64,000 bases of DNA, from the NCBI GenBank assembly GCA_035084275.1, contig CM068752.1:13144001-13208000 (forward strand), written 5' to 3'. Positions 12,497 through 40,720 of the stretch are shown here, piece after piece. Below the pieces are notes generated by a model. That model worked only from the letters and a program-made list of their open reading frames with translations. It was not told where the DNA came from and ran no database searches. Each line of letters begins with the position of its first letter. Within the stretch, counting starts at the first letter, position 1. A program made the position numbers and the translations under genes. This stretch comes from Hydrolagus colliei. Lineage: Eukaryota.

Positions 12497-13170
12497 GGAG
12501 TCCTGTAGCTCAGTGGTTAGAGCACTCGCCTTACAAGAAAGAGACCTGGATTCAATTCCAGGCAGGACGAAACTTTGGACAAGTTTCCTTACTCCACAAG
12601 CCTAATAATAATCCCTAAAAATAAAAAATAATATTAAAATGGTCACTTCAAGCAACGATTTTTGTGGGATACTGCTGCGTGCAATTGGCTGCCGCATTTC
12701 ATTCACATATATACAATCAATTCACTTTACAGTGTACAGTAAAAGCTCATTTATCCAGCAGTGAATATGCTGGATATTCGGGCGGCAAGTTGCCGAAAAC
12801 CCAACGCAAAAAAAATTTACTTATTTTAAAACATACCACATTAGTAATAGACTAAACAATAACAGAATGTGGAAGGATACTTAACAATAAAGCATTCCAG
12901 CACACTTGGTAAAATGATCGGTAAAAAAGCATTCCAGTGTTCGTAAATTTAATAAGTGCATATGCGCAAAGTGAGCATACTCGCGAGTGACCTGGATGGC
13001 TACGATATGAGATCTGTTCCCTGGAATGGTGAATTGTATTGGGAGGTAACCTGTTGGGGGTTGAGCATTCCACTTGGTTGGGTGCCAGATAAACGGGCTT
13101 TTACTGTATTCTGTGAAGTGCTATATTAAAAAAGATGTGGAAAGCGCTATATTAAATGCAAGTATTATTA
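12497..13170 (+). mobile_element. Composite tRNA-derived SINE (interrupted by the MITE)
   Basis: tRNA-like head GTCCTGTAGCTCAGTGGTTAGAGCACTCGCCTTACAAG..CCTGGATTCAATTCCAGGCAGGAC (A and B boxes), Deu-like core tttgtgggatactgctgcgtgcaattggctgcc, and L2-like tail gtggaaagcgctatattaaatgcaag. Confidence 0.88.
12737..13106. mobile_element. 370-bp MITE (Tc1/mariner/pogo-type)
   Basis: Left end CAGTAAAAGCTCATTTATCCAGC; reverse complement of right end CAGTAAAAGCCCGTTTATCTGGC. TA on both sides; it interrupts a SINE. Confidence 0.88.
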
Positions 13171-14799
13171 TAGGACTTTACTGCTGCATATAGTCACCAT
13201 TGGCGGGCAAGCCTTTAGCCGTTCTGTCCCCAACTTCTGGAACTCCATCAAGTCTCGCCACTGGTTATCAATATTAATTATTTATTTGCAAATCACCATC
13301 AAAGTTTTGATGAATTTCAGTTCTGCCTGCAGGTGGATCTCCATTCAGGTGGATAGTATTTCAAAAAGAAATGTGGAGTTTTTCTTCTCGTTATCCTCGT
13401 TTATATTGCCCTCCTTGTGAAAATTTACATCAAATTCAAAGTAATTGCTCATTTCATTGTTGTTTATCTAATGATGAAAACAGCTGCATATTTGTGTGTA
13501 TATCAATCAGTGTTATTTCGAATCAATAACATTGATAAAGTGTTTCAAGACTTTTGTTTTACATGAAAGGAACTATGTTATCAACTATATTATCAATATT
13601 GGAAGTTGTTATTATCAGCCTCTGTGATCTCCTTTCCACTGCCTTAGACAATGGCCCCTCAAAGTCCTAGAGATCAGGGCTGTGCACAGCATCAGTTAAT
13701 CCATAGAAGAAGAGGCTTTCAGGGTTGAATGTTGTTCGACTTGTATCATAGTTAACATTATACCGTTCACATCAAGTCATAACTTACAATTGTGACCTGA
13801 TCACGGCTCACAGAGAGTCCAGATCGATGCGATGATTAAGAATCTGATCATGTTTATTTCTCTGGTTAGCAGTTAATGTATGGGGTTACTGCATTTACAC
13901 AATCCAAAAACAAGGCAAAATTCATCAACACAGCTGTACAGTCAGAAAGAGATTCTACTAAATATCAAGATGAAAAAGACACTGGGTTCAAATTTGTATT
14001 CAATGTATTCATTGGACAATTACCCTGGTAAACATTATGTGTTGGACAAGTTTTATCCCATTGCAAGATAAAGCAGATGCTGACTTTCCTACTCCACATA
14101 AACTTGTTGAAGACAATGGTAGATTATATGTAATTAAAACTTAAATTGTACATTTTAGAACCCACAAATGCTCCACTATGATTATTTTTTATTGAACTCT
14201 CAATTGATGAATGCTCATGGACTCACAGGGCAATTCTTTTCAATTATACATATGCTATGAAATATAACCATATTCAGGTCTAACTTGCAATATTTGCAAA
14301 GTGGGTAAGTGCGAAATACTCTCTCTTTTGCAAATATTGAAAGTCATCTAATATTCATCAAAACAGCCAATTGTGATTTCTGAACACCGGGAAAGTGCCT
14401 GACAAAGGTTGAAGAATGGGTGTGTTTCGTTCCTGAGGAGCAGTGTCTAGAACTCTGAATATTTCAATAACAACAACAAAATTACATTTGTATAGCGCTT
14501 TCCACATCAGGAGGACGTCCCAAGATATAATAAACAAAATTAAAATAATTTAAGATTATTTCTATTAATTAGATGAAAAATCATTATTGGAAAGTTATTG
14601 CTCTTCATTATTTCTAAAAAGAAAATGGAAATTTACTTTGAAATTAGTGTGCTTAAATTCCGCATCTGATGCATTCAGCCTGATTTTTGTATCAGCTCGA
14701 CTATTTAAATTAAAATTTTCTAACTGGATTGAAGACTTTTGTGCTCAGCAATGTAAGTGGGATATTATAATACTCTTTTATAAATGAAAGAAAGAAGAC

Positions 14800-14960
14800 A
14801 AAATTAGAGAGAGAGAGACAACGAGAGTCAGACAGGGAAAGAGAGAAACCGTGAAAGACACACAGACAGATAGAAAGAGAGACAGAGAGAGAGAGAAACA
14901 GAAAAGCTGGGAGAAAGACATTCAGATGGAAAGTGAAAGAGAGACAAAGATGAGGGACAG
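14800..14960. repeat. GA-rich simple repeat
   Basis: gagagagaca/gaaagaga units. Confidence 0.8.
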
Positions 14961-16001: not shown

Positions 16002-16139
16002 TCACACTGTGCCCACAAACTCCACTTGCTGACTCTGCCCTTTCACTTGCTGCTTCCCGTTTGGTTCATGCTGCAAGTTGGCGTAGGCAAATTCCTTATC
16101 CCGCCTGCCCTGAGCATCAGCTGGAGCTCCCTGGGCACC
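16002..16139 (-). CDS. Siglec-like receptor, probable terminal coding exon (FAYANL motif)
   Basis: gtgttcccagcAG|GGT acceptor in phase 0, matching the previous donor; 45 codons plus TGA: GAQGAPADAQGRRDKEFAYANLQHEPNGKQQVKGQSQQVEFVGTV*. GC-rich island within AT-rich surroundings. Confidence 0.65.
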   Translation of the reverse strand, partial: GAQGAPADAQGRRDKEFAYANLQHEPNGKQQVKGQSQQVEFVGTV

Positions 16140-17125
16140 CTGCTGGGAACACACGGTTCGAAACATTGAGAAACAACAGTGGAATATGAAATGCCGTTTC
16201 TCATTGAATATGAACCCACTGAAAGCAGGTGCGATCAGAACACCAGTAACAGTTCTGTTTTGTGAGTTGCTGCGATGAACTGGAATGCATGGGAAAATGC
16301 AACATAGTGATTGAAAATTGATGGGCTATCAGTCACTATGTCCCAAAGCTATGGAACACTTTTCCTCTATCTCTCCGCCGTGCCTCTTCGACTATGACAC
16401 TGTCAAGCGTTCTAGGGCGCTACCCTGCATGTGGGGCGCTATATAAATTGTGGTTGTTGATGATGGGCTCAAACAGAAAATGTGAAGGAGGCTGTGACAA
16501 AAATGCAGGGAATGCATGGAAAATATGACCTTTCAAAATGTAGCCAATGTGATGATTGTGAAACATCCCATATTTCATTTTGTAGTGATTCAAACCAATT
16601 TATCGTTTTTCTTAAACACAGCAGTTCATAGAAACTTTAAGACATTTAGAGACCAAGCTCAAACCCGTACTGAAGATCTCCAGCAACAGATGACAGTTTA
16701 CAACTGGTACTCTCTATACATTGATAATGGCATAATTCTTTAACATCTGGATTGTAGGATATTGGCATCTGCAGCCATTGTTTCATTTTGTAGTTTATCT
16801 CATTGTCTCCCCTCCTCCTCCAAGGTGTGGCTTCACAAGCTTCTTTGACACTTCAGTGCAAGAGGTGATTGTTTGACTTCGGATGTATCTCACATGTGCC
16901 TCATCCTATATCCACATTCAAACCAGCAATGATCTCAAGACAGTGGGTTTTTCCCTCCTCGCACAGATACAACTGACCTTCTCTCGACCTTATACTATAG
17001 GTGGCAGAGGTAAACTGGTACAGGTGGGATGACCCCCCAGTTGTTGCTCTATGAGGGGGCTTTAATGATGCCCAATGACAACTGAGAAAGCCCATTACAT
17101 GCCAACCTCAACGTTGTCATCATTG

Positions 17126-17476
17126 TGGAGCTCAGTGGTGAAAGCACTCGCCTCATAAGCGAGAGACCTGGGTTTGGTTCCCGGGGCAGGCCACAAACAT
17201 TGGGCAAGTTTCCTTCCTCACATGTCTCTGTTTATCTAACAGTAAGTAGGAACCCAATTGTTAGTCGATTGATGGATCACTTTTCTGGGGATAATAATTC
17301 TTTAAAATAATTAATAATGGTAATTTGGTCCCTCAATCCACGACTGTTTGTGAAACTGCAGCATTTCACTCATAGAATATACAGTCAATTCACTTCAGTA
17401 TATTCCATGAAGTGCTTTGAGACATCTCAAAGATATGATATGGAGTTATATCAAATGTAAGGATTATTATTATTAT
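17126..17476 (+). mobile_element. Composite tRNA SINE, long variant
   Basis: ctcagtggtgaaagcactcgcctcataagcgagagacctggg head; acagtaagtaggaaccc segment; L2-like tail. Confidence 0.85.
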
Positions 17477-17684
17477 GTGATCAATAGTTAAGGAGATCCC
17501 CTTTCTCATCGGGTGAACATTTCAGATCATTTAATACAAAAGAGGAGACCTATTATTATCACTATTATTATTGTTATTGTTATTATTATTAACTAGAAAC
17601 TCCCCACCACCACCTCTTGGGCTCTCCTCCCCATTGAAGATCCCTAGATGCAGAAGGACAAACTTCAGTAGGACCTTTACTCAC

Positions 17685-17746
17685 CGGTTTTGTCATTTGC
17701 ACATCAGTGTACATTACTGGGTACGTCTCATTTTCCAATTCTCTTC
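17685..17746 (-). CDS. Siglec-like receptor, cytoplasmic exon with ITIM (VMYTDV)
   Basis: gtttttctcAG|GA acceptor, CCG|GTGAGT donor; 62 nt, phase 1-0. Encodes GRELENETYPVMYTDVQMTKP; VMYTDV (17700-17717) fits the ITIM consensus (I/V/L/S)xYxx(L/V). Confidence 0.85.
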
Positions 17747-18339
17747 CTGAGAAAAACACAAGGGGAACCAATTAATCATTTGATTTCAAAATATGTCTCT
17801 CATCACTTTAAAATCCGCTGATGGATAAGAGATTCACAATGATCCTTCCTGTAAAGAAAAAAAACCCTGTATTTTTATTGCACTTTGTTGGGTCACAATA
17901 TCTGATAGTAATTACTGTCACGTGTTGTCGTTGATTCTTGTGACTGATCCATTTGCTCCAGCAATGCTTTTGTTGCGAAACGGTTAGAATGAAGAGTTCA
18001 TCTTCCCAAAGGTGATTGTCACTGTTTTAAATTCCAACTCTTTCTGATCACGTTCAAACCAAACCAAGAAAGTGAGACCAGAGACTGGAAATGAATGACA
18101 AGTGAAGAACATACTTGCATCGAAACACCTCAAAGTGCTTGCTGTCAAATATAATTTTGCACACAGCCAACAAACAGCCACAAGGTGATCCAATATCTGG
18201 GTGAATGTTGGCCAGGACACTGTGGGGAGTTTCCAATCATGTCATGAGATTTTTAGTGTCCACCTGATAAACAGGTAGAGAAATTGCAAGGGAATTAAAG
18301 GAATTTTGTGGGGAAAAAAAAAGAATGATGAGCGCTCAC

Positions 18340-18450
18340 CTTCGATAACATGCTTCTTCCGTTTCCACGACACAATAACAAAGATTATGATGGCTACAGT
18401 CGTCCCGGCGATGAGGCCCACAATCAGCAGCAGCATCCTGGTGAAAGTGC
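18340..18450 (-). CDS. Siglec-like receptor, transmembrane exon
   Basis: caaccAG|GC acceptor, GAA G|GTGAG donor; 111 nt, phase 1-1. Encodes GTFTRMLLLIVGLIAGTTVAIIIFVIVSWKRKKHVIE: hydrophobic span followed by a basic stop-transfer cluster, no charged residue in the membrane core. Confidence 0.9.
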
Positions 18451-18456
18451 CTGGTT

Positions 18457-18760
18457 GACAACAACAACAACAACTTTGATTTATACAGCGCCTTCCACGC
18501 CGGACGGTATCTCAGAGCGCTTTTCAATAGCGGATCCCAGGACCAAGCCAGGGGCAGGGGCAGAAAGGTGACCAAAGGCGTGGTCGAAGAGAAAGGTCTT
18601 CAGCTGTGACCTGAAACTGGGAAGAGAGGGGGCGAGGTGAAGGGAGTGAGGAAGGGAGTTCCAGAGCCTCGGGGCGTAGTGGCTAAAGGCACGGCCGCCG
18701 AGGGTGGAGCGGAGGATTCGGGGGACATGGAGAAGGCCAGACCCAGACAACATAGCACCA
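18457..18760 (-). mobile_element. L2 3' fragment abutting the Siglec TM-exon acceptor
   Basis: GGRAFSHYAPRLWNSLP..FRSQLKTFLF; tail gaaggcgctgtataaatcaaa(gtt)n. Confidence 0.88.
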
Positions 18761-21139
18761 TTGAGGGCAGAGCCACTGCAAGCTTCAAACTCGTTACACG
18801 GTTATAGCAGGTTACAGCTTGCAAATCAGTGAGACCAGAATCATTTCTTCACACAGCGAGTTGTGGCAAGCTGCAGAAGATAATTTTTTCACAGACTGAT
18901 TACATGAGAAAGAGGATTCTGAGCTGCTTCCATCCCTACAGTCTAAATGCTCGTAGCATATATGCATATACTGCACAGTGCAGTAGTCTCCAGGCATTAA
19001 ATATTAATCTCCCAGACAATGCTGCAAGCAATCCGGATGAGCCATGATAGGGAATTCTCAAAAAATGTAATATTTAATGGCATTGGTGAATCAGAATTAT
19101 GCTGTTATCAGCTTCTCATTTGTTTCATACACACCTAGAGAATCTAAAATCCAGCTGAGTTTGAAATGTCAAGGCGATATGCTCTTACCATCTCAACCAT
19201 CTGGTGCTGTGATGTATGTTATCTAACTACAGTCAAGTTATTGCTGTCTCACTTTATGATAGCAACCGAACATAACCCTGGCATCAGTGACACTTTCTGC
19301 TCATGTGAAGCCTGCACAAAGTGATATCAGTGGTGACCTTATGTCCTGCACGTCTGTCTGATTAGACTTCCATTTGCTACTCAGAGCCAGAAGCAATGTG
19401 TATTGCAGTTCTGGTTATCATGGGCCCATGGGAGACCTCTATTCGTGTACCCCTGAGAACTCCGGCAACCATCTGCCCTGGAAGTTTCCTGTTTCCCATC
19501 CGTCCGCCATACCTGTGAAGCAGCTTTCAGTCATTCTGCTCCTGCTCTGTGAAATTCCATTCTGCAGTTCCTACCATTTACCCCCTCCCTCCCCGCCATT
19601 AAAGCCCACATTAAGACCTATCTTTTCAATCGCTTTTTCAGTCATACTTTCGTCCTTGACATCAGCTCAGACCTCTTCACAAAGACAAGTTCAGACGGCA
19701 AGAAAGGGCAGGGGAAAGGCGGAGAAGGCCACTGGATTGGTTGAAGAGGTAGGTTTCAAGGTGGCATTTAAGGACATATAGATAGTAAATGGGAGAGAGT
19801 TTCAGAGGATAGGGGATAATTGAGCAATGATGCTGAGCGTTGGCATCAGGAACTTCTTGATTAAAAAAATCCATTTAGAAATACCATAGAATCAATAATC
19901 CAACATTGACAAGATCATATCTGGGACTTCTTCATGTCAACCTTCTGAGTCTGATTAATTGAGCTGCCAGTCTTTCGAGCCAATATATTAGTGAGTCAGA
20001 GGTTATTTTACAGACTGGGACCTAAACAGATGATGGGACTTGGGAGATAGCAGCAGCACTGGTAAACTAGAACAATTACCTCATTAACAAATAAAGTTAT
20101 AGAGCATTACAATAGGGTTTATCAGTTAGAAAGAACAATTTTATTTAAAATAACTGTTCAGAGAAGAAATAAGGAATAGAACAGAAGTAGAATATTTTAA
20201 CAACTCAAATTATATTTAAAATTGTTTAAATGTTCATTCTTAAAATATCAAAATCACGCTAGAGGCTTGAAGTTTCTCCTGATTTTACGCTGATGATTTA
20301 AATTTAAGATAGTGCAGCATGTTGCAAAATTCTTCAATTCAATCTTGATTTAGCAGAAATTGGAAAACTGGCTTCAAAATTCACTTTCAAATTCTACATT
20401 TTCTTAAATGTTAAGGCAATAGACGTTCAAGGCTAAGGCCTTATTGAGGAATTTGAGCCTCAGATACATAACAACAACAACAACAACTTAAACTTAAACT
20501 TATAAAGCGCCTTTCACGTCGGGAGGACGTCCCAAGGCGCTGCACAGGAGGCGTGTGACCCGAGCTGGGAGGGGAGTGTTTGGGAAGGGGTGAAACATGT
20601 AGGGGAGGTCGAAAAGTTTTAGCCTTAAAGATCATTTTAAGATATGAAATTGTGCATTCTTAAATGCAGTATTAATTTTGAAAATGGTTTTCCTTAGTTC
20701 TTAAATAGAATCAAATTCCAAATTTAGATTGAATTTGGATCCCTGTCTGTCCAGTGCCTTGGGACACCTTCCTGATGTGAAAGGTGCTATACAAATGTAA
20801 CTTGTTACTGTTGCTGAATTTTAAAATATGTTCAGATCTCTGTAGAGACTCGAATGTTCAACAACAAAAATATTGGCTGAAGCATGGACTAGGTACCATT
20901 TGGGGCCTTGGGTATCTGAGCAGTTTTATTAATATAATATTAATGCTTTTTGCAGAGCTAAATCTTGTGAATTAAAAAATGTGTGTTTGTTTAAAAAACT
21001 GTATGAACACCTGGAAACACAAATGCCTTGAACCTGGTGACAGATATTTCCTGAACTTGGTGACAATCATGAATTGAAAAAAAAATTTTTTAACTGCAGG
21101 TAACTCTTTAGTAACTGGAAAAATACATTTTACACTTAC

Positions 21140-21394
21140 CTGGTGGGCATTTTTCTGAGACTGTGACCCCATGTTTGTTCTGAGCAAGGCAGGATACACA
21201 AAACATGGCAGTTGTATCCAGTTGGAGTGTGCTACTTGAATGAGTGCCATTGACATCCTGCATTATACTGACTGCAGGATCAGTGAGATTTATGTTGGGG
21301 TCACTGATCTTCCACGTGATCTTCGCAGGAGGGCTGGCCTCAGCCACACACTTATACATCAAGTCTTGGGTTATGGTGACTCTATCGGGTTTGT
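21140..21394 (-). CDS. Siglec-like receptor, membrane-proximal Ig domain exon
   Basis: ttccttttgcAG|AC acceptor, CCA G|GTAAG donor; 255 nt, phase 1-1. Encodes YKPDRV..YKCVAEASPPAKITW..SSTLQL..VSCLAQNKHG..CPP, like the membrane-proximal domain of MAG/CD33-related Siglecs. Confidence 0.9.
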
Positions 21395-21800
21395 CTGCAA
21401 AAGGAAATTAAATTTGATTACTACAGCTTCAGAAATAATACTCGTACCAAGTTAACTCTTGGTACCAGCGCCTTAGGATGTCCTCCCGACATGAAAAGTA
21501 TATACGTATTATAACAATATAATTTTGTATTATAACAATACCTGCAGCCAGAATTCCTTTGTTTCATGTTATCAAAAAAAAAGATGAACAAGGCACTTCA
21601 GCTCATTTGATCTCACCTTTCCCTCTAAACCATTACAGCATCAAGCCCCTTCTTTAAAAAAAAAGTCAATGTTTAGGTTTCCACATGCCTTCTTAGTTAC
21701 CTTGGTTTCACACAACACTGGAAAGGACTGTAAGAACTGGAGCTCCTTTAAATAAGGTGATGTGTTATGATGGCCCATTGCCGTCATAAGCATTATTTTG

Positions 21801-22175
21801 TGGAGTCCTGTAGCTCAGTGATTAGAGCACTCATCTTGCAAGTGAGAAACCTGAGTTTGATTCCAGGCAGAACGCAACCTTGGGCAAGTTTCCTTACTCC
21901 AAACACCTGATAATAAACTCCCCCCCAAAAAAAACCAATAATAAAATTGTAATTTCAATCCCCAACTATGTGTGGGATGTTGCTGTGCACAATTGGCTGC
22001 CATGTTTCGCCCATAAAATATACAGTCAATTCACTTCATAGTATGTTCTTGGGAACGTCCTCCTGACAAGAAAGGTGTATACAAGTGAAATTTTGTTGCT
22101 GTTGTTGTTCTGTGATGCGCTTTGAGACATCTAGAAGATGTGAAAAGCGCTATATCAAATGCAAGGATTATTATT
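21801..22175 (+). mobile_element. Composite tRNA SINE with a nested L2 3'-tail
   Basis: Full head, core and tail; ~60-bp L2 tail inserted at ~22051-22110 between tgttct repeats. Confidence 0.85.
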
Positions 22176-25100
22176 AATTTTACCCATGTCGATTTCTCAG
22201 TGTGAAAAAATATTTTCTTGTCCTGCTGCCTTGGGATATCTGAATGTATCCTGGAGTTACATCCTTTGTTTTCTAATATTATAATAATACTACTTGCATT
22301 TGATATAAATAATAATCCTTGCATTTTGATATACCCCTTTCACATCTTCTAGATGTCTCAAAGCGCTTCACAGAATTTATTGTAAAGTGAATTGACTGTA
22401 TATTTTGTGGATGGAACATGGAAGTCAATTGCACACAGCAGTGATTGACAAACAGTCCTTGATTGAGTGACCAATTTATTATATATTGTTCTGAAGGAAT
22501 TAATACTTGGAAAAGGTGATCTGCCAATTGACTAACAACCAGTTTCCTACATACTGCCAGGTATAAAAATACTACTTCCATTTGATATTTCAACTTTACT
22601 GTGTGGTGTAATGACTGTATACTTGAGGAAGGCACAAAGCAATGTTCCACAAATAGTTATGATATGAGTGACTATGTTTTTTATTTGTTTGGTATTGTTG
22701 CCTGGACATGAGGAGAACTCACTTCTCTTTTTGAATAGTGGCAAGGGATCTTCAACGTCTACATAAGGAGGCAGATGCGACCTTGGTTTAACGTCTCACC
22801 TGAAGGACGGCACCTTTAATAATGGAGTGCATTCCCACACTGCACTGGACACCGTTTTTCAATGCTGGAGTCAGGGTTTGTGTCTGATTCACAGGATCCT
22901 GACTGAGTTTGGACAGCAGAGCAATCCTCAGAGAACCATTATGTTACAGACAGGAGAAGCACACAGTTCAGTTCCATGCCCATTCTCAGGAAATGATGGA
23001 AACAACCAACAACAAATTCCATGACAATTATGTGGAATTTTACAAATATCGCAGGCCGCATGTATCAGACTAGCTCACTCTCGCCTGTTGAGTCAGAAGC
23101 CACATGTTTTGAACTTGAACAGTCTAAACTAACACTCCAATGCAGTGCATCAATTTGCATACAACAATGTACTATATTACAAACAACCATGGGGTAAATG
23201 AATGTGATTTTTTTTCTATTTGTGGGAATGTTGCCCAAGACACTGAGATGAACTCCATTCTCTTAATCTCCCTGATCTTAGTCACTTCACAGGGTGTCAC
23301 CAGCAGTTCTCTCTGATCTCTCCTAGCTGTGAAGTTACTGTTTCTTTAATCTTCAGGGTGAGGGTAAATGGCCGAGTGCTTATGCTTAAAACCTCTTTCT
23401 CTTTTAATTGCTTCAGTATTTTTAGGTAAATCATAGAATCGTATCCTTGCCCTTTAAATATTCCTCCTCTTCAAGCATCTATCTAATTCTCTTTCAAAAG
23501 AATCTATGGACTCTGCCTCGACAACAAATTCCACATTCCAACCTCCCCCTGAGTGAAGCATTTTCTTCTAATTTCCCCCAAATCATACTGATTTCTAAAT
23601 TAATTCATTCAGGATGATTGATTTGACTGCCACTAGGCAGTGAGGAGGCGGAAGGGGGAAGGAGATGGAAAATATACACAGTCATATCACTTTACATTAT
23701 ATCCCATGAAATGCTCTGAGAGATTTCAACAGTGCAAGGAGTATTTTTCTACAAAGTAATAGTCCTAGATTACTATCCACTGACTATGGCTAGGAAGTGG
23801 ATAAAATCAGACATATAACCAGGGGACATATGTAGTCTAGATATTCAGAGAAGAAATATAGTCTGAGCTTCTCATTCCTGTCATCTTTATGATTTTGGGT
23901 AGGTTCAAATGAATAAAAATAGCAATGAGCTGAAATGACAGGCAATGGAAATAACAGTGTTTTGTAGAAATAAATGGTCTATTATTAGAAGCCGAAATTA
24001 CAATTCAAAGCAGGAATTATGTGAAGAATGTTGTAATGGTCAGGCGATGGTTACAGATGCATGGTAATAAGTATGTATTTTACTGAAGAACTTTATATGT
24101 GACTAAGGAATTTTATAAATTCCTCTATTCAAAAAGTTGCCGGGGAGTTCTACTATATCTGCTATCCACCTCAGGAGGACACAGTTCTCAAATATATTAA
24201 CAAATGACCAAATGAGGTGGGGGTGGAGGTGGAGGTGTGTGTGGGGGAGTGGGAGGGTAAATGGAGCATTTGGAGTTAAAAGATGTCATAGGTGACATGT
24301 AAGTTGTTGTGATTGAATCAACGCTCTGTGGCGGACTCAATACTGTGTTTCTTGAAGGAAATGGGTCTACAGGATTTCAAATCACTGCTAATACAGACCA
24401 GCCACACCGGCTCATTTGCAGAACAAAGAGGCAGAGGAGACACTGGGGCTGAGCATACCGACTGACTCTGTGGATACCAAATTCAAAGGTTGTTGGTTCA
24501 ATCCCCACTTCGGGACTTTGAATTGATAACAACAACAACTTTTATTTATATAGCACCCTCCACGTCAGACGGCATCTCGGGGCGCTTCACAATAGCGGAT
24601 TCCGGGACCCAGCCAGGGGCAGGGGTAGAAAGGTGACCAAAGGCGCGGTCGAAGAGAAAGGTCTTCAGCTGGGACCTGAAGCTGGGAAAAGAGGGGGCGA
24701 GGCGAAGGGAGTAAGGAAGGGAATTCCAGATTGATATAGTTGAGTTGATACTTCAATACGCTACAAGATTGGAGGTACTGCCCTTTATATGAGATGATAA
24801 ATCAAGGTCACATCTGCTTGTTCAGGTGGACATTAACGATCTCATGGCACTATTCGCAAAGAGGAGAGACTCTCTTTTGGTTTCCTGGCCAATAATTCTC
24901 CAAGTAAAATTGGTCATTCACTCTATGGCTGTTGTGGATTGTTGCTAAGTATAAATTGGGGTGTAAGCAAATCAAGAGAGGTAGTGAGGTGTGCCAGGGC
25001 ATGGAATTATTTCAGGCAAGTGTGAGAATCTTGAAATTGATCCATTCTGCATTATGGAGCCAATGGAGTCAGGCATTACTAGGTGATGGGGGTACAAGAT

Positions 25101-28100
25101 TTTGTGTGGTTGAGGTTATGCATGGCCCAGTTTTGAATTGAATTTATGAATGATAATAATCCTTGCATTTGATATAACACCTTATCACATTTTCGAGCTG
25201 TCTCAAAGCTCTTCACAGCATACAATGTACAGTGGAGTGACTGTATTTTGTGAGCAAAATGCGATAGCCAATTCTGTTAGATATTAACTCACTCATATTT
25301 TTGGGGAGCGAAGAATTACCCCCCGAAAAACGATCCACCCATTCACTTACAACTGGGTACTTAATGCTATCAATGCTACACAAATAAAGGAAAAATACCT
25401 CATGCAACATATTGATGTTATTGCTAATATGTCTCTGTCAGCAATAGAGCAGGGCTTTCTGTGATCAATATATAAACTGATGACTAGCGGGAATTTAACA
25501 TCAAAATGTAAAGCAGCAAGTTATAATGGTAGAAAAAGAAAGAAATCTTTCTTACCAATGACACAGTTCATATGGTTATCTAGTTCCTATAATTTCAGCA
25601 TGATCAAACTTAATCTATTCATGGTGTGCATATCCAGTAGAAATATAAATATAGTATGAGTTACAAATGGCAAAAACAAATTATTCTCAACAAGCAGAAG
25701 TGAGAACATCTGTTTCAGTGCTCACTGACCACAGTGCAACCTCAGTGCATAATTGCACAAATTGTCTCCGGGTCTGTGGTTAGCAGGATTCCAGTAAACA
25801 GCTGATGTGGTAATAAAATGTACGGATTTTAGGCAGGGATATCTGTTCATCCAGTAAAAACACAAATTCCCCAAAAGAACTACCCAATGCAGAGAAAAAT
25901 ATATAATTAAGATTCACAATGCATATGATGAATGTGACCTAATTAATTGGCATATTAATCCAAGTCAGGTAAACAGGTAACAGCTGTATTTGGGTACAGT
26001 AAGTATAAAGATCCATACTTGAATGTTCCACTTTCGAACCTGTTCAGTTACATTACTAACTGGAAAAAAGCTGTAGTAAACCTCATTAACAAGACCCTGG
26101 ATCAATCAGCTATGGCAAATATTTGATACGTTAAGAGAATTATCGTCCGACCTCATCGCAAAAAGCTTGGATAATAATAATAATTCTTGCATTTTGATAT
26201 AGCGACTAACTGTGTGTATTACCAGTATAACCTCATTAATAATAATAAACCTTGCATTTGATAGCCATCTAGATGGCTCAAAGCGCTTCACAGAATATAA
26301 AGTGAATTGACTGTATATTTGTGGATGAAACATGGCACCCAGTTGTGCAAAGCAATGTCCCACAAACGGTCATTGTTTGAAATGACCAATTTATTATTGT
26401 TTTTTTTCAAGGGATTATTACTTATGGAATAAGGAAACTTGCCCAAGGTTTTGGCCTGTTGGGAATTGAACCCAGATCCTGTGGCAGAGATGGAGGAATG
26501 CAGTCCTGGTCAGAATGTAGGGAAGGAAGGAAAGGTGAGGATTGAATCTGATGTCTGGGTTGTGCACAGGTTCAATGAGTCTGGGGAATAGGCTAGGGAG
26601 ATTCAAGAGGTCAGAGTCATCGGTGCGAACACATTGACAGGAGCGAAAAAGGATGGCTTTTGTTTTGTCAACATTCAGCTGAAGAAATGTAATGCTTAAC
26701 CAGCCCTTGATATCTGAAGCAAAAAGACCTGGAGTTGCGATTAGAGGAAGAGAAGTAGATTTGGGTGTAATCTGCATACAGGTGGAAGTTGAGTCATATC
26801 TGCAGAGATGATGATGTGGAGGAGGATGTGGTGGGAGCAAACAACATTAGCAGAGGCATAGATGGATATACTGTCAAGGGGACTGTATTGTTTGGGAGAA
26901 TGTGCAAATCAGATTGCAACAGAGCAATGCTTTAGTGCTACAGTAGTTCTGCATCAACAGATAGCAAATTGAGCTTGCAACACACATATTATTGGGGTGG
27001 TGATCTGAAGTGGGAGATGAGAAATCATCCCTGTGATTCTCAACTAACATTGAATCATCCCAAGATGCTTAAATGTCAGTTGGGAATCATAGGGATGCAA
27101 CTGGGCTCTTCCATTCACAGAGGAAACAGCAGAGGCCTGGTAATTTATTTGTTTTAGGGATTTACAGAACTAGAAAAGTTGTCCTTCTGACCCCCAAATA
27201 AAGCAAAAAATATATAAATAACCTGACATATCAATCAGAATGCTCATTTTTTTCTTTTGTCAAATAATTATCTAACTTCCTCTTGAATTTGCTACACAAT
27301 CTATTATGTACTGTATTCAGTTTTGTGGAGAGTCTAGAGAGGCTGGGATTATTCTCCTTAGAAGTTACTGAGAGATTTAACAGAGGTGTTCCAAATTTTT
27401 ACCCATTTGAGTTGTTACCATCTGGGATGCACTTGCCTGAAAGGGTGATGGATGTAGATTTGATAATAGCTTTTAAAAGGGAATTGGACAGGTAGGTAAA
27501 AAGGAAAAAAAAATTGCAGGGCTCCATAAGAGTAAGAGTGGGGAAGTATGACTAGTTGGATAGCTCTTTCAAAGAACACAGACACAATGGGCTAAATGGC
27601 CTCCTTCTGCCTAAATGTTAATTGAGAATCATTGGGATCATTCCTTGTGCCCTACTCCCAAGTCTCCAATCCAACATCCTGTAGTGTATTGGTTGGAGCA
27701 CTCCCCCTCGCCACCAAGAGGATCCTGCTTCAAGTAGGAACTGGGTTGTTAGTCAATTTGTTGATTGCTTTCTGGGGGCTAATAATCCCATCAAAAATAA
27801 TTATAATTTAATCAATCAATCCACGTTTGTTTGTGGGACACTGCTGTGTGCATTTGCACCACAAAATATACAGTCAATTCACTTCACAGTATATTCGTGC
27901 AGCACTTTGAGATATCTTGATGATATGATAAGACACTATATCAAATGGTAGGATTATTATTGTATGACTATTATTATTCTCTTTACGTAAAGTAATTTAA
28001 ATGTGAACTGTGTTTGTTATTCTGATGTCAAATCCATTCTGGTTAATATGACAAACATATTGCATAACATTGCTTACAATAAAGCATAGAATCAGGCTAT

Positions 28101-28547
28101 GCAGCCCATTCTATGATTCTACTGGGGAGAGAGCCAGAGAGTGGGATTGACTTTGAATAGCTCTTTTCAAAGAGCCGGTACAGACTTGATATGCCTTTTC
28201 TGCTGTAAAATTCTATGATTCTATGATCTAGTCTATGATGGTGTTTATACTCCACATGAGCCTCCACTATTCCAGGTTTATTATCTGAATCCTTTAGGAT
28301 CTCGAATACTTCAATAGCATCTCCACTGAGCCTTCTCTTGACCAGTGTGAACATTTCTCATTTTTGAGGCATCTTCTCCCAATTTCTACATATTCAGGAA
28401 CTATCTACATTTCCCAAATGAAGGTCTGTTAATGGACACCTTGTCCGTTTCTTGGCTGGGCATGGTATATGGGGTACACATTGTAAGAGCCTATAATTGA
28501 AAATACAGAAATGTCTCAATTGGGAACATTTTAAACCAAATACTCAC

Positions 28548-28826
28548 ATTGGACATCAACCTCTACCTCTGTGGCGATGTTGTTTCCTAGAAAATTCGCT
28601 GCCAAGCACGTGTAGAAACCGGAATCTAACCTGGATATCTTATGGAACAACATGACATTGCTTGTGGTATCTAAGATCTCTGTGTTCTCTGTGATTTTAT
28701 CTTTTTTGTACCACGTGTAATTGGATTCAGGGTAACTGTTACTCGCACAAGCCAGGGTCACACAATTCCCTTCTTTGATTTCTTCCTGCGTTCCATTCAC
28801 TAAAACCATTGTATTTTTGGGAGAGT
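28548..28826 (-). CDS. Siglec-like receptor, Ig C2 domain 2 exon
   Basis: ctgcttgcAG|AC acceptor, CAA T|GTGAG donor; 279 nt, phase 1-1. Encodes YSPKNT..EGNCVTLACASNSYPESNYTWYK..DSGFYTCLAANFLG..VDVQ. Confidence 0.93.
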
Positions 28827-29764
28827 CTGCAAGCAGAAAGATAGGATATCAATGTGTCAGTTATCTAGACATTTGAAAGTTGAAATTCTGCTGACATGGA
28901 TATCATTTCTGTAAAGTTGTCTGGATGGTGGTGACGCAAATATTTTTTATTGTTAAAATATATATACAATTTACTTTCATGTCAGGAGTAAGTCTCAAAG
29001 TACTCGGCAATGCTGGATGGGCACCTGAATTAGGGGTGGGAACCGAGAGATCAGGGAGGGGTTAGATGACATCTTGGTCAAAGAGCTACATCTTGAAATG
29101 TTATGTTAATGTGAGAAACCCACAATTTGTGAGTGTTAGTTTCTGGCAGGTACACAGAATAATGGAGTATGCAGCTGCAACTCATCAAAGGTGTAACTGT
29201 TCCTGGTCAGCTTTATGAAGTCAATAGCGTATATATGCTTTTACTGTATATTGCTTTGCATAAGTTATACACAGGTACCGTATCCTGAAAAAATAAGTGC
29301 TTGTTCCTCATAGGAATGATCAATGATATTTAAAAATCACAGTTCTCATTTACTGTCCAAATTGCGTGGCATATCTTAATTGATGCAGGTGTTTATTATG
29401 GATTTCGACCTAATTAAAGTGTCTAATTCAAGAATGCAGGAGCAGATTAAATGAAGAATTCTTTCAGAGTATTTTCAGAAGAAATATGATTAGTTGAATG
29501 GCCTGCACCATGCTGTAAAATTCACAGTCAATCAGAGAGTGTTGAAAGGTGGAGGTGAGTTAAAGACATTAGAAGATACATGGATTGCAGAAGGATCATT
29601 GGGTACATTAACAACAACAACACTTGTATAAGAATGTAAAAATTAGGAGCAGGGTTAGGCCATTCAGCCGCTCGAGCCTGCCCCGGCATTCAATAAGATT
29701 ATGGTTTATCTATTCTAACTCCATCTGCCTGCTTTATCCCCATAATCCCTTTATTTGCCTTTAT

Positions 29765-30500
29765 CCTCCCAAGGGGGCAGGCAGGTTGGTATAACGCCTT
29801 TCACATCTGGAGGACATCCCAAGGTATTGGACAGTTACTGCTTCAGACCCGAGCTGAGGACGGGGATGGTGAGGGAGGGAAGAGGGTGGGGGATTAGGAG
29901 TTGCTGATGGGTCCATCGAAGAGGAGAGTCTTGAGGCGAGACTTGAAGGCGGCCAGGGAGGGGGCGAGGCAGAGGGACTGCGGAATGGAGTTCCAGAGAT
30001 TGGGGGCAGAGTGGCTGAAGGCTCGGGGGACATGGAGCAGGCCAGGGCTCACTGAGTGGAGCGGGCAGGTAGGTTGGTAAGGTCACAGATAGAGGATGGG
30101 GCGAGGTTGTGGAGGGCTTTAAATGTGAGGAATGGATCTTGAATTGGATTCTTTGGATCCAATGGAGTTGGGCAAGGATGGGGGAGATGGGGTCATGGAG
30201 TTTGGAACGGTCGAGGACAGGGACCGCAGAGATCTGGATTATCTGCAGACTGTGGAGGGACGAATCAGGAAGGCTGACCAGCAGGATATTTGCATAATCT
30301 AGCCGGGATGTAATGAAGGCGTGGATGTGGGTTTCAGTTGGCTTTGGGGGTGAGGTAGTGGTGGAGTCGGGCAATGTTGCGGAGATGGGGAAAGGCAGAG
30401 CGAGTCATATATGTGGGGGAGGAAAGACAGTTGAGGGTCAAACAACACACCTAGGTTCCTGAATGGCTTGGTGAGGTTGAGTGTGCAACCATGGAGGTTG
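29765..30500 (-). mobile_element. L2 3' fragment
   Basis: IHAFITSRLDYANILL..LHSLQIIQ..ILAQLHW.QRIQFKI motifs plus L2 tail. Confidence 0.88.
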
Positions 30501-31848
30501 ATGCTGCCATTAAGCCCTCTTTATACACAGTCCATGTAATCCTACTCTACCACAAACATTACTGGGGATGAGAGGTTTCATTTATGGCAGGGCTGGGGTC
30601 ATGGTAGCATTTTTTTTATGACTATGAAAGGTAATGGCAGGGTACATAGCAATAGATTATTTTCCCTGGTTTATGGAGAGGTAAAATCTGAATTATTTGA
30701 TCACATAGTCAATCACCATATAATCACACAATTGCATCCCATTTTAGGTTATTTTATTTTCTCTTCCTATTGTCTCTTATCTACATCACCCCCAAACTAT
30801 AGTGCACCATGGTTGACCCAGTAGCTCAGAGATCCCCGAGAGGAACCTAGATGCCTGACAACTATCACATGCCGCTACAGCTGTGCACTCATTGGGCTCA
30901 CTACTGGCACAAACCTACTTCTTATCACTCTGTTACCTGGAAAGTTACGGTGGCGTTGCTCCACAAACCGTAGAAGAAATGTAATGGGAAACTATAGAGC
31001 TTTCCCTTTTGTAAGGCATTGTATTTACATTTGATGCAAATTGTATTTACATTTGATGCAATTTGGTAGATTTTAGTCCTACTTTTCAAACTTCTGAACA
31101 AATCTCTCGGACCCTCCTGTCTCAGCAAACAGGTTTTGAATCCTTTTAGTGTGTTTGCTTCACTGGGTTTCCCAGTAACTTGTGACATCTATTAATTTTT
31201 GCGTAAAATATTCGATTTGTTTAGTTTTTAAATTTGAATGTTAGGTTTCTTTCTCCTTGGCAGCTCTTCCCTGATGTTTTGCAGAGGTTGTTGGCTATCC
31301 CACCACCGAATCATGCTCTACCATGGCCTGCGCTCTTTGCTTCCCCTTCAGATGGTCTTATTTATTTTATTCTTGCTTTATATTCCATTGCCAGAGCAGA
31401 GGGATTGCGACAAAATGTAGCTCTTTAGAGCAATCAGTCTTCACATTTAGAAACCTTGTTGGATTCTGGTTTATTGTGTGTGTTATCACGTTTCATGATT
31501 TACTGTGAAGGCACTGGAAGATCGGATGCCAAAAATTGTTTGGGGTCAGTTTGCTACCAGGAAACTCTTTTCATTAAGGTTTTGTAATGCCAACAAAACC
31601 CTGCAATGAACAAGTCTGCAATGATCAAATAGCATCAGATGCAGTCTGCAATATTTCCCTTACTTTTCATCCAGTCTACTGCTGCAGAACATGTGTCTGT
31701 GGGACTGATCATAAGTTTGTGTATGGGTCCCTATACGTGAATGCATCTCTCCATTATATCTTCTATTACAATTCTGCTTCAATAATATGCCTCGATATGT
31801 GAATGTCAAATTTGGGTTATTTGAAAGCAATCTTAGCCAATAACTTAC

Positions 31849-32157
31849 ATTTCACCTGCAGCGTGACATTCGTATCTTCTGAATAAGGGAACGGGATGTA
31901 GTCAACAGCACATTTGATCATTTTTTGATGGTGCTGGTATGATGGGATGAAATTGACCTTACTGATGACTGTCCAGGTAGATCCGGACAATTGTTCATCA
32001 ATGACCGGTGAATCGTCTGTCAAATCGGAGATGCCCTCCCAGCTGAGGCGGACTCTGCTACGGTGATCAACGTTGGAAGTGGAACAGGTGATGGTGCTCA
32101 TCTCATCGCTTTCAAGCAGTTCCATTGGGATGGATATCTCTGGCTTTGTTGGTTGAC
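31849..32157 (-). CDS. Siglec-like receptor, Ig C2 domain 1 exon
   Basis: ttccaaatAG|GT acceptor, AAA T|GTAAG donor; 309 nt, phase 1-1; follows an 81-nt intron. Encodes GQPTKPEI..TITCS..LSW..SKVNFIPSYQHHQKMIKCAV..VTLQVK, resembling Siglec domain 2. Confidence 0.93.
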
Positions 32158-32238
32158 CTATTTGGAAAAGGAAATAGGTGCCTTTAGTCAATAAATTAAC
32201 AAACTACGTTCAAAGAAAAGACAAAGAGAAGGAGTTAC

Positions 32239-32601
32239 CATAAACTGAGACTTTGACGCCGTGATCTCCTGACCAGTTGTTGCCCTGGCCCATTTCAAAC
32301 CTGAAGTAGTAAATCCCACTGTCAACTTTGTTAATGTTGGTTATCTGAAGGGAGCAGTTCTTCTCAGACAGATTCCCCACCAGTGTTATGTCAGGCGAGA
32401 GCCTCTTGGTATTCCTGCTGTTGTATATTTCGGCGGCTTGAATGTTATTGGGAAAAGGAGAGTTCTTCAGCCATCTGGCAGTTATCTCTAGGGTATCTTG
32501 GACTGTTTCTGGGTACTCGAAGGAACAGTTCAAAAGCACAGTTTCTCCTTCCCAAGCAGACACGGACGTATCAACCCAGACAGACCACTGGCAGACTGAC
32601 C
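32239..32601 (-). CDS. Siglec-like receptor, V-set Ig exon (first coding exon found)
   Basis: cctgcAG|GG acceptor and TAT G|GTAAC donor; 363 nt, phase 1-1. Encodes SVCQWSVW..WEGETVLLNCSF..ARWLK..GNLSEKNCSLQI..DSGIYYFRFE..NNWS. B/E-strand Cys pair, F-strand Arg (codon 32300-32302) and A/G-strand Trp are typical of Siglec V-set domains. Confidence 0.93.
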
Positions 32602-34919: not shown

Positions 34920-35232
34920 AAGCTCAGAGATAATGGTGGTAAAGGGTGGAGCCTTACCCTGAATGAGACACGCAAGCAGCAGTGCCAGGATGCAGTGAGA
35001 GGCACTCATTGTGCGGATTACAGCCTGGAGAGAACGTGGAGAGAAGAGCGGAGAACAATCAGACACATTAATACCTGCACAATGAGCTGTGAACAATGAG
35101 TCACTGTTCACACACACACACACACGCACAGTATTGAAACTGGGCTGCATTTGTTTAGCAGGAACTGCTCTGTAAACTCCTACATCTGTGGACTGAGACA
35201 CTGGCCATTCATTGTCCTCTCGCACATTAACA
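34920..35232. repeat. Unclassified ~310-bp dispersed repeat, copy B
   Basis: aagctcagagataatggtggtaaagggtggagcc...cattgtcctctcgcacattaac; matches 2589-2893. Confidence 0.9.
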
Positions 35233-35669
35233 GAGTTCTATAATGGTTTGCAAGATGGATTACAATATATAGATTTTTTACAAATCTGAATTTTCTGTTT
35301 TATTATTACGAATTAAACATTGTTATTACTGTCAAAACTATAATCAGCTGTGCATCATTTCAAAATAGATGGGAATCAAAGGACAGTAAAAGTTATATTT
35401 TTAAAACAGAATCTGTGATTATCAGTGCAGCGTGGAGTGTTTATCAGGTTGGCATCCTCACAGAGAGGAACATATAATTGTGTCATATATAAGTGTAATT
35501 GAGCAAGTAGCCAAATAATACTTTGAGATACATGAAGACTGTATGACAAGAGAGCAGAGTGCACGTAGAGTACGTAGAGAAAAGCAAGTTAAGGACTCAT
35601 GCTGGAAATATTTCTTTACTCAGATTACAATCCAGAGCTGCAACGATTTACCAGAATTTAGAGACTCAT

Positions 35670-35985: not shown

Positions 35986-36484
35986 TTTAAGAAAGACTGC
36001 AATGATAAGACAGTAAAATGGGTAATCTGGAAGAATTGTTCTCAGAACCACAGTGTTTTTGTTCCTGTAACACTGGCTCTTGCTAGGGAGAATAGTTCTT
36101 CAGCCAGCAGCCTCTCTTGACCACCACCCACCCCACCCCCCTCCCCACACACACAATCACACAGATATGTATCTTCCTTGGGCTATCCTCCCAATGCAAT
36201 TTGTTTGTTGTGGCTGCACTTCATGTGTGTGGCAACATTGTGAGTGATGGCAGCCTGTTTGGATGTAACCATTGAAGCTCTCAGCTGAATTTTAATTCTG
36301 TCCTTGTCCAGCGCTTACACACACAATTTCCACAAGGGATTCCCCTCTCCTCCTCAGGTCTAAGGTCACTGGCTGATTTCCCTCTTTTCCCCACCCCCTC
36401 CCCACATCTCTCAACTCTAGGAACACCAATTGTGTCCTTCCATCACTTTTTTGGGGGTCTGCCACATGCGGAAATCCATCGCCG

Positions 36485-37030
36485 TGCTTAAGAGTCTCCA
36501 AACCAAGCTGAGATTTCCATGAATTCCCATCTACACATGGAAATCTCTGGGACAGATTGTTGGAATGGAATGTGCACGTTCTCTCTCTCCCTGCAAGGAC
36601 TCATTCTGTTTACCTAATTCCAGAAAGCGTTAGTTGCAGCTTGGCAAGAGCCAAGGCTTGGGGACCCCAAATTGTGCTTTGGAGTACTGCTGAAGTCTAA
36701 CTAGCAAAAACTGCACAACTTGCCATTGATATTACTGTCCCACCCTACCTGTTAGAGCTTTGCCTTGCAGGGTTAACAACAACAACAACAACAACAAAAT
36801 TACATTTGTATAGCACCTTTCATGTTGGGAGGATGTCCAAAAGCATTGCAGGAGATGAGTGGGTTGACTATCTGCCCCCAATCATTGGTCTGCCATTTCT
36901 GGTCAAGCTGATAAACCAGGCTGGCTTTGCTGTCATCAGCAGTACCCTGGAATATTGCAGACCAGCCTGGTTTAGAAACCGGACTACCGAGACCGGCACA
37001 GAAGGCTGGCTCGATTCCAACATTCCATTA
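36485..37030 (-). repeat. Unclassified old ~500-bp dispersed repeat, copy B (with L2-tail insert ~36778-36845)
   Basis: Reverse-complement similarity to 1730-2215. Confidence 0.8.
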
Positions 37031-39534: not shown

Positions 39535-39840
39535 CAGCATTATGGTTAGAGCACTCGCTTTACAAGTGTGACACCTGTTTTCGAATCCAGGCAGGTCATG
39601 ATGAAACCTTGAGCAAAGTTCCATATTCCACATGCTTAATAATAATCCCTCAAAATAAAAATACAATAATAAAATTTCTATCCACGACTGTTTGTGAGAC
39701 ACTGCTGTGCATAATTGGTTACCGCATTTCGCCCTCAAATATACAGTCAATTCACTTTACATTATATTCTGTGAAGCGCTTTGAGTCGTCTAGAAGACGT
39801 GAAAAGTGTTATATCAAATGCAAGGATCATGTATTATTAT
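39535..39840 (+). mobile_element. Composite tRNA SINE
   Basis: ggttagagcactcgctttacaag..gttttcgaatccaggcagg head, core and tail. Confidence 0.85.
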
Positions 39841-40494: not shown

Positions 40495-40720
40495 TGAGTT
40501 TGTGTGTCTGCAGATATGTACATGTACATGTTTATGAACATATATGAGTGTGTGTGTATGCACTCAGATGTGTTCATGTGTGTGCTTGTATGAAATAGCA
40601 TGTACATGAAAGCATGTGTGTGCACACAATAGTGTGTATTAAAATGTATGTGTTCACGTGTCAATGTTTCTGGATGGTTGTATAGTTGAGTGTATGTGAA
40701 TGGTGTTTGGCTATTTTAGT
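40495..40720. repeat. Degenerate (TG)n/(TA)n simple repeat
   Basis: tgtgtgtatg/catgtacatg units. Confidence 0.75.

Follow-up and report, generated by a model that had tools for sequence, protein, structure and literature searches.

The DNA analysed here is a 64,000-nucleotide stretch of the genome of the chimaera Hydrolagus colliei (assembly GCA_035084275.1, contig CM068752.1, positions 13,144,001 to 13,208,000 of the forward strand), referred to below as the window; it contains no N and has a G+C content of ~40%. On its minus strand lies a gene with a complete open reading frame (ORF) distributed over eight exons and encoding a 522-aa precursor, whose architecture is that of a type I receptor: a signal peptide, a V-set immunoglobulin (Ig) domain, three C2-type Ig domains (D1 to D4 in all), an uncharged transmembrane helix and a cytoplasmic tail with an immunoreceptor tyrosine-based inhibitory motif (ITIM). 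In the reading that we consider probable, and which is based on sequence comparison, this is an intact receptor of the Siglec family (immunoglobulin-like lectins that bind sialic acid), belonging to a distinct and slowly evolving lineage that occurs in all major groups of cartilaginous fishes and probably in sturgeons and paddlefishes, and that would combine the sensing of sialoglycans with ITIM/SHP-mediated inhibition.

Canonical AG acceptors and GT donors were found at every exon junction, and exons 2 to 8 follow one another in phases 1-1-1-1-1-0, the acceptor of the V exon being likewise in phase 1 (Table 1). The precursor carries nine N-glycosylation sequons, and its ectodomain contains 12 cysteines. 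The earlier note on this DNA had proposed seven exons joining in frame between positions 16002 and 32601; all of them are there, with exact end coordinates and AG/GT sites throughout, but the set was incomplete, as the signal-peptide exon and a tandem paralogue of the gene had both been overlooked. The signal-peptide exon matches the N-terminus of the Callorhinchus milii RefSeq protein P0001 and, at 94% identity, positions 10001-10052 of the corresponding C. milii locus (L001).

Table 1. Coordinates of the features recognised in the window
Feature	Position	Strand	Content or evidence
Exon 1	34958-35009	-	Start codon, signal peptide MSASHCILALLLACLIQ and, directly after it, the first base of the split codon of Gly18; donor gtaagg
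Exon 2, V-set domain (D1), residues ~18-139	32239-32601	-	Splice sites; Pfam V-set 5.3e-16, Ig_CD22 4.4e-12
Residues within exon 2	Arg118 codon 32300-32302	-	WSVW (22-26), Cys43 (B strand), Cys100 (E strand), Arg118, Trp127; alignment to MAG, CD22, CD33 and Siglec-1
Exon 3, first C2-set domain (D2)	31849-32157	-	No extra Cys pairing to D1; C2-set_2 4.8e-11
Exon 4, second C2/I-type domain (D3)	28548-28826	-	Orthogroup-specific extra Cys263; Ig_3 2.3e-19
Exon 5, short membrane-proximal C2 domain (D4)	21140-21394	-	Four Cys (350, 400, 403, 417)
Exon 6, end of stalk and transmembrane helix (425-448)	18340-18450	-	Stop-transfer KRKK
Exon 7 (62 nt)	17685-17746	-	Membrane-proximal ITIM VMYTDV (Tyr469), motif at 17700-17717
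Exon 8, end of tail	16002-16139	-	EFAYANLQHE (Tyr496; FAYANL at 16074-16091), degenerate distal VEFVGTV, stop TGA at 16002-16004
Promoter-proximal/5' untranslated block upstream of exon 1	35010-35250	-	~93% identical to Callorhinchus (intron mean ~81%)
Tandem paralogue, exon 1	2627-2678	-	Signal peptide identical to that of the main gene
Tandem paralogue, V-set exon (boundaries approximate)	77-444	-	44% identical to the V-set of the main gene; Arg kept (CFRFE)
Non-coding, single-copy blocks located 1-7 kb upstream of exon 1	36280-42330		~90-92% identical to Callorhinchus (intron mean ~81%)
Two near-identical CR1-like LINE copies, intact-looking ORF2	7024-9105, 59023-61529	+	RVT_1 1e-35; Exo_endo_phos_2 2e-12
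tRNA-like Rfam matches	12499-12570, 17129-17184, 21804-21875	+	36-43 bits

Additional Ig exons, which would have made the gene an orthologue of MAG (myelin-associated glycoprotein) or CD22, were looked for in the window, and a tblastn search with 230 diverse Siglec proteins (E<1e-3) found no further Ig exon beyond the V exon of the neighbouring paralogue, the 3-kb and 7-kb introns of the gene included. The intron segments that are conserved with respect to Callorhinchus and were checked individually (e.g., 23350-23549) were rejected as exons, being either the tail of a CR1-type long interspersed nuclear element (LINE) or interrupted by stops in every frame. Because no extra Ig exon was found by tblastn and the intron peaks checked are non-coding, the four-Ig layout is a property of the locus and not an artefact of missed exons.

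Protein P0001 (522 aa, annotated as 'myelin-associated glycoprotein-like') is 91% identical to the window protein, and locus L001 and the window are collinear, the introns being ~81% and the exons 82-94% identical. When the eight exon boundaries of the window were applied to L001, AG/GT sites were found and the translation reproduced P0001 exactly. Between the two species the ratio of nonsynonymous to synonymous divergence (dN/dS) is 0.158 at a dS of 0.274; it lies between 0.11 and 0.23 in every part of the gene and equals 0.128 in the V exon. The locus is a real, intact and selectively maintained gene, far beyond what chance would allow. The cartilaginous-fish origin of the DNA, surmised in the earlier note from the letters alone, is likewise confirmed: it is holocephalan.

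Ectodomain, transmembrane helix and cytoplasmic tail

Assignment of the protein to the Siglec family, and not to a group outside it, is supported by PDB, Pfam and Foldseek matches. A phmmer search against the PDB placed mouse MAG first (2.9e-35, collinear over D1-D3), followed by human CD22 (4e-20), Siglec-8 (4.5e-13) and then Siglec-5, sialoadhesin and CD33, while the Pfam matches comprised V-set, Ig_CD22, C2-set_2 and Ig_3. The AlphaFold2 model of the ectodomain, as well as the search of representative sequences described below, was made with the 91%-identical C. milii orthologue, and the results are those of the orthologue. The model had a predicted local distance difference test score (pLDDT) of 89.7, and Foldseek searches with it again returned MAG first (9e-25) and CD22 next (9e-19); in sequence, the N-terminal V-set domain and the C2-set domain next to it are significantly similar to those of known Siglecs. 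The D3 domain is alignable to D3 as well as to D4 of MAG, and the short D4 domain, which aligns weakly to MAG D5, is modelled in the orthologue as a beta-sandwich with a pLDDT of 81-93.

The earlier note had pointed to an essential arginine with flanking aromatics in the V-set domain, and the alignment to known Siglecs agrees with it. Arg118 (YYFRFE) shares a column with the strand-F arginine by which the carboxylate of sialic acid is bound in MAG (YYFRGD), CD33 (FFFRME), CD22 (LGLRME) and Siglec-1 (YNFRFE), and Trp23 and Trp127 align with the aromatic residues of the A and G strands. Cys43 (LLNCSF) and Cys100 (KNCSLQ) stand in the columns of the B-E cysteine pair of MAG, CD33 and CD22 and presumably form the B-E intra-sheet disulfide bond, whereas strand F has no cysteine. 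Arg118, the B/E cysteine pair and both tryptophans are invariant in 15 of 15 chondrichthyan members of the clade delimited below.

The situation is different for the disulfide bond between D1 and D2, which is the usual hallmark of Siglecs, although it stands outside their formal definition. Both interdomain cysteines are absent from the window gene, where Thr (at the GxC site of D1) and Asp (in D2) are found instead; both are missing in 17 of 17 clade members, while among 109 other sequences both are present in 104 and both absent in one. This double loss is, as far as the alignment goes, a clean marker of the clade. In the strict sense the protein should be labelled 'Siglec-like', its binding of sialoglycans being predicted.

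Two further cysteines were observed, namely Cys21 (GSVC/QW, in the region of predicted signal cleavage; ~32591-32593) and Cys263 (EGNCVTLAC, in D3). The window gene and all orthologue models that span these positions have them, and the paralogues and the sturgeon gene do not.

The transmembrane segment, MLLLIVGLIAGTTVAIIIFVIVSW, contains no K, R, D or E, in agreement with the earlier note, according to which it lacks the Lys or Arg used for pairing with DAP12; therefore no adaptor of the DAP12 type is expected. Both tail motifs named there were also found. VMYTDV fits the ITIM consensus (I/V/L/S)xYxx(I/V/L) and is the only canonical ITIM in the tail; the window gene and its four full-length orthologues, which range from chimaeras to rays, share it in the conserved form PV(M/I)YT(D/E)V. 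When the tails of MAG, sturgeon 'Siglec-10' and CD33-type proteins are compared, the position of VMYTDV is that of the proximal PPxIY motif. The second motif lies within the sequence EFAYANLQH, which does not vary between the window gene and the five orthologues with models extending that far. FAYANL holds the position of the main xxYAxL ITIM of other Siglecs and fits, in addition, a pYxN (Grb2-type) site, but it is only ITIM-like because of the Phe at position -2. In place of the third, distal TEYxEI motif the window gene has a degenerate VEFVGTV (a VEILGAV variant also occurs), with Tyr replaced by Phe or Ile.

Orthologues, tandem paralogue and surroundings of the gene

Orthologues of 519-521 aa were found in the elasmobranchs Stegostoma, Rhinoraja and Narcine, with 63-66% identity to the chimaera protein and almost no indels, and those of Heptranchias and Pristis are represented by partial or differently built models. 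Together with P0001 they represent the same gene, with the same exon boundaries, four-Ig layout, ITIM and FAYANL motif. Their automatic names conflict with one another ('MAG-like' in Stegostoma, 'CD22-like' in Rhinoraja, Narcine and Heptranchias, and 'PSG7' in Pristis), and these database names are contradicted by the phylogeny, that is, by the tree and the topology test presented below. Identity between shark and ray orthologues amounts to 80-85%, as compared with 42-52% among sharks for the group of protein P0050, another shark Siglec, and 46-52% between shark and ray for the group of the tandem paralogue. Judged by these identities, the lineage evolves slowly, unlike the CD33-related Siglecs.

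The tandem paralogue lies ~13 kb downstream of the gene, with its remainder beyond the edge of the window; for its V exon, Callorhinchus P0022 came out as the best match in the database, at only 56%. The block directly upstream of exon 1, for which a regulatory role may be assumed, is copied upstream of the paralogue at 2748-2893 with 94% identity. Altogether, a 300-bp module of promoter and exon 1 is 94-95% identical between the two genes, whereas their V exons are merely 44% identical, and such near-identical 5' ends point to a shared regulatory module or to 5'-end gene conversion. A similar arrangement was found in the sawfish Pristis pectinata (CM019858.1, ~51.46-51.55 Mb, loci L003/L004), where one strand carries, head-to-tail, the orthologue P0006 and a paralogue named 'CD22-like' (P0027), in the same order as in the chimaera window and at a nearly equal spacing of 12.6 kb. 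The tails of the paralogue group are of the multi-ITIM type, with the CD22-like motifs YENV, LVYASI and ILYACI. One shark isoform of this group, P0019 of Hemiscyllium ocellatum, has an Arg inside the transmembrane helix and a short tail devoid of tyrosine motifs, a signature of a DAP12-type activating partner, which suggests that paired inhibitory and activating Siglecs exist in sharks.

Searches for other genes in the window yielded LINE ORFs, heads of short interspersed nuclear elements (SINEs) and conserved non-coding blocks only. The single-copy blocks located upstream of exon 1 are possible candidate enhancers; one of them (38460-39210) is weakly matched by sequence lying ~9.5 kb upstream of the sawfish orthologue, another (41.6-42.45 kb) showed no convincing coding frame, and no Rfam match was obtained in the region of these blocks. 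On the other side of the gene, a segment of the minus strand at 14320-14859, 1.1-1.7 kb downstream of the stop codon, reaches sliding-window peaks of 94-95% identity to Callorhinchus and may be the 3' untranslated region. Apart from the two LINE copies listed in Table 1, numerous LINE 3'-tail fragments are scattered across the introns. Each of the matches resembling transfer RNA (tRNA) adjoins a repeat family that is multicopy in the window and in the Callorhinchus locus; rather than tRNA genes, these matches most likely represent the head portions of SINEs derived from tRNA.

Phylogenetic placement and alternative identities

For the phylogenetic analysis, 1.84 billion representative sequences were searched with D1-D2 of the C. 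milii orthologue and the 150 best relatives were taken (source names were obtained for 30 of them); mouse MAG and human CD22, CD33 and Siglec-8 from the PDB alignments served as anchors, and mammalian CD22 and others were added from a further search. Maximum-likelihood (ML) trees of the V plus C2 region (D1-D2) were constructed with IQ-TREE for 108 and 126 sequences. The window gene and its orthologues formed a group with support of 100/99, and together with the chondrichthyan paralogues with multi-ITIM tails they made up a 15-row, exclusively chondrichthyan clade (99/95). After adding the 'Siglec-10' proteins of Huso and Polyodon, a 17-member group (100/96) was obtained. In the tree of the two C-terminal Ig domains the gene also joined the tandem paralogues, and not MAG. 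Several further groups of shark Siglecs were seen in these analyses, i.e., P0050/P0139/P0026 (sister to the CD33-related Siglecs), the 'CD22-like' P0018/P0029, P0149 and the Siglec-1-like P0146.

The acipenseriform 'Siglec-10' genes (Huso P0159, Acipenser P0167 and Polyodon P0234; 527-543 aa) are probably the bony-fish counterparts of the clade. They share with the window gene the four Ig domains, a length of ~530 aa and the loss of both interdomain cysteines, and their tail motifs VIYDVV and LVYADL stand at positions matching VMYTDV and FAYANL. In a 15-protein panel Huso P0159 was the best non-chondrichthyan match of the window protein (160 bits), and the best match of P0159 outside acipenseriforms was, in turn, an orthologue of the window type (Narcine). 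They differ from the window gene in their low identity (28%), long branch and retained distal TEYSDL, and in Polyodon the arginine is lost; moreover, the neighbours of the acipenseriform gene (NHP2 and a bromodomain gene) gave no tblastx match in the window. Should this link be real, the lineage would not be confined to cartilaginous fishes, and the term 'lineage-specific', applied to the receptor in the earlier note, would be too narrow.

Among the alternatives to a lineage of its own, co-orthology with CD22 (Siglec-2) fares best, even if we hold it to be rather unlikely. According to this explanation the window gene and its multi-ITIM neighbour would be chondrichthyan duplicates of the CD22 lineage, with the window copy reduced to four Ig domains and a single ITIM. 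In the ML tree, the 17-member group is indeed sister to shark CD22-like proteins, Siglec-1 and mammalian CD22, and the window protein shares with CD22 the Ig_CD22 match of the V domain, the MAG/CD22-type fold, an inhibitory tail combining an ITIM with a YxN site, and the G-strand Trp used by CD22 (W128) and sialoadhesin; the paralogue tails have the CD22-like motifs given above, and several orthologues are named 'CD22-like' in RefSeq. However, support for the sister relationship is moderate (94/72) and alternative placements were not rejected by approximately unbiased (AU) tests, mammalian CD22 joins Siglec-1 and not specifically the window clade, and the shark 'CD22-like' P0018 and P0029, which fall into the sister group, have kept the interdomain cysteines. 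CD22 also differs in having seven Ig domains, more ITIMs plus a Grb2 site, and the interdomain disulfide, and the membrane-proximal domains of the window protein could not be aligned as a unit to those of mammalian CD22. Having four Ig domains and, in the tail, a single canonical ITIM along with one YxN motif, the protein is not a seven-Ig CD22, which is in line with the domain count given in the earlier note.

Less probable still is that the gene is, as its RefSeq name suggests, the cartilaginous-fish MAG (Siglec-4), a glial molecule of the axon-myelin contact that is short of one Ig domain. MAG is the best structurally solved relative by sequence as well as by fold, it shares with the window protein (mouse 5LF5 being the reference) the equivalent of Arg118, the WxxW N-terminus, collinear D1-D3 and a related membrane-proximal domain, and it too evolves slowly. 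The WSVW of the window protein resembles the C-mannosylated W22 of MAG, and the order of the tail motifs, PPxIY followed by xYANx, recalls gecko, frog and paddlefish MAG. In humans, MAG is presumably situated directly upstream of CD22 and oriented like it, which recalls the tandem pair described here. Among the 150 best representatives, none of the chondrichthyan sequences fell into the clade of bona fide MAG. An ITIM is present in fish MAG (PMC7226832). Against this, bona fide MAG (mouse, gecko, frog and paddlefish) stands outside the group in both D1-D2 trees, being separated by a 100/99 branch in the first of them, and the AU test rejects the union of the window clade with MAG (p=0.0046, delta lnL 52, i.e., the difference in log-likelihood). 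The window protein has four Ig domains and not five, a Trp in the G strand where MAG has Tyr or Phe, and no C-terminal EYAEIRVK; the D1-D2 cysteine pair, lost throughout the window clade, is kept in four of four bona fide MAG sequences aligned, and the paralogue with which the gene shares its promoter module has a multi-ITIM tail of immune type. Sturgeons and paddlefishes possess a gene of the P0159 type in addition to a true MAG (the P0068 cluster), which means that the two lineages were already separate, provided that the acipenseriform link is real. Orthology to MAG, also doubted in the earlier note because of the domain number, was rejected on the basis of the D1-D2 trees, the AU test and the tree of C-terminal Ig domains.

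Two related candidates were rejected as well. A mosaic origin, in which N-terminal gene conversion hides a MAG/CD22 pair, found no support in the C-terminal Ig tree, where the gene is again joined to the tandem paralogue. Heptranchias P0050 ('MAG-like', 629 aa) was considered as the true shark MAG, but its relatives are exclusively from sharks, followed by reptile CD33-type proteins and mammalian CD22, and not by MAG.

The earlier note had suggested a relationship to the CD33-related Siglecs, of which the gene would be a stem or sister lineage. This seems improbable to us, slightly more so than the MAG explanation. The layout is similar, as the short inhibitory Siglecs of this group (human CD33 and Siglec-8, amphibian and reptile members) also combine V and C2 domains, an uncharged transmembrane helix, an ITIM and a second tyrosine motif; the activating-type isoform in the paralogue group fits the paired-receptor pattern typical of CD33-related Siglecs, and joining the window clade to this group was not rejected by AU tests (p=0.284 and 0.394). 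In the ML tree, however, human CD33 and Siglec-8 belong to a separate 99/93 group, which excludes the window gene and has shark members of its own that are other genes (the nearest being Scyliorhinus 'Siglec-8' and Heptranchias P0050/P0139). The slow evolution of the window gene and its missing interdomain cysteines, a pair kept in human CD33, speak in the same direction. So does the tail, in which FAYANL stands at the position of the LxYAxL-type ITIM, the canonical ITIM VMYTDV is an extra, proximal one of the PVxYTxV kind known from MAG and 'Siglec-10', and the distal ITIM-like Tyr of TEYxEI is lost. Of the expectations attached to the phylogeny of the V-set and C2 domains, the existence of a distinct clade apart from MAG was borne out, while the affinity to CD33-related Siglecs was not supported as stated, since the gene was placed with the chondrichthyan and acipenseriform clade.

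It is very improbable that the protein is Siglec-like in ancestry only, as an adhesion or signalling receptor of the Ig superfamily in which sialic acid binding has been given up: without the D1-D2 disulfide the head could have taken another orientation, and the arginine is lost in several aligned relatives (e.g., P0149 and P0234), so that loss of lectin activity is common in the family, but the binding-site residues and the B-E pair are invariant in all 15 chondrichthyan sequences and the V exon has the low dN/dS given above. The divergence spanned by the chondrichthyan members of the clade exceeds 400 million years.

Proposed function and significance

If the gene encodes an inhibitory Siglec of a separate lineage, as we consider probable, its mode of action could be envisaged as follows. 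After cleavage of the signal peptide, the V-set head would present Arg118 and two Trp of the type used by CD22 and sialoadhesin, the three C2-type domains keeping it away from the membrane, and would bind sialylated glycans, in cis or in trans, through Arg118. The strong conservation suggests that the ligand would be an endogenous (self) one and not a pathogen-driven one. Src-family kinases might then phosphorylate Tyr469 and Tyr496, and the phosphorylated ITIM would recruit SHP-1/SHP-2, perhaps together with Grb2 at the YAN site, by which nearby activating receptors would be damped. The receptor would presumably act alongside its tandem paralogue, which shares the promoter and exon 1 module and carries a multi-ITIM tail.

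Several observations weigh against this interpretation. The main functional rival is a glial, MAG-like role, as the conservation, the MAG-like WxxW (the C-mannosylated Trp) and the order of the tail motifs would also fit a non-immune function in glia. The tail has a single canonical ITIM, with Phe at -2 in the second motif and the distal Tyr lost, and the absence of the D1-D2 disulfide, as read from the alignment, departs from the Siglec hallmark. As for the extension to bony fishes, the acipenseriform link rests on a long stem branch (1.43) and is missing from the tree of the two C-terminal Ig domains, which is the weaker one. Finally, our literature search revealed no expression, binding or signalling data on this gene.

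Fishes are said to have only Siglec-1, CD22, MAG and Siglec-15, and no CD33-related or dedicated inhibitory Siglecs, a statement that is based on teleosts (PMC7226832), and we found no paper describing Siglecs of cartilaginous fishes in the literature searched. As the gene is already present in RefSeq in the form of inconsistently named automatic models, it should be regarded as a new and as yet uncharacterised representative of a known family and not as a new kind of system, and the view of how Siglecs work is unchanged by it. Contrary to the four-Siglec statement for fish, the results indicate that cartilaginous fishes possess a further Siglec lineage, if not more than one, which bears an ITIM and is strongly conserved. 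This conserved lineage sits beside a faster-evolving multi-ITIM paralogue, and another shark group appears as the sister of the CD33-related Siglecs. The analysis also corrects the misleading automatic names 'MAG-like', 'CD22-like' and 'PSG7'.

A slowly evolving receptor of this kind offers a test case for the origin of Siglec inhibitory signalling and of self-sialoglycan recognition. Only tentatively, and with less confidence than the assignment itself deserves, it may be proposed that the clade represents a fifth 'conserved' Siglec lineage inherited from the jawed-vertebrate ancestor, four-Ig and ITIM-bearing, which gave up the D1-D2 disulfide, remained constrained in cartilaginous fishes and in sturgeons and paddlefishes, and was lost in teleosts and tetrapods. 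If this were true, the lineage and its tandem partner would imply that paired inhibitory and activating Siglec signalling is older than, and independent of, the tetrapod CD33-related cluster, and the lineage may fill roles, possibly even MAG-like ones, that are held by other Siglecs in bony vertebrates.

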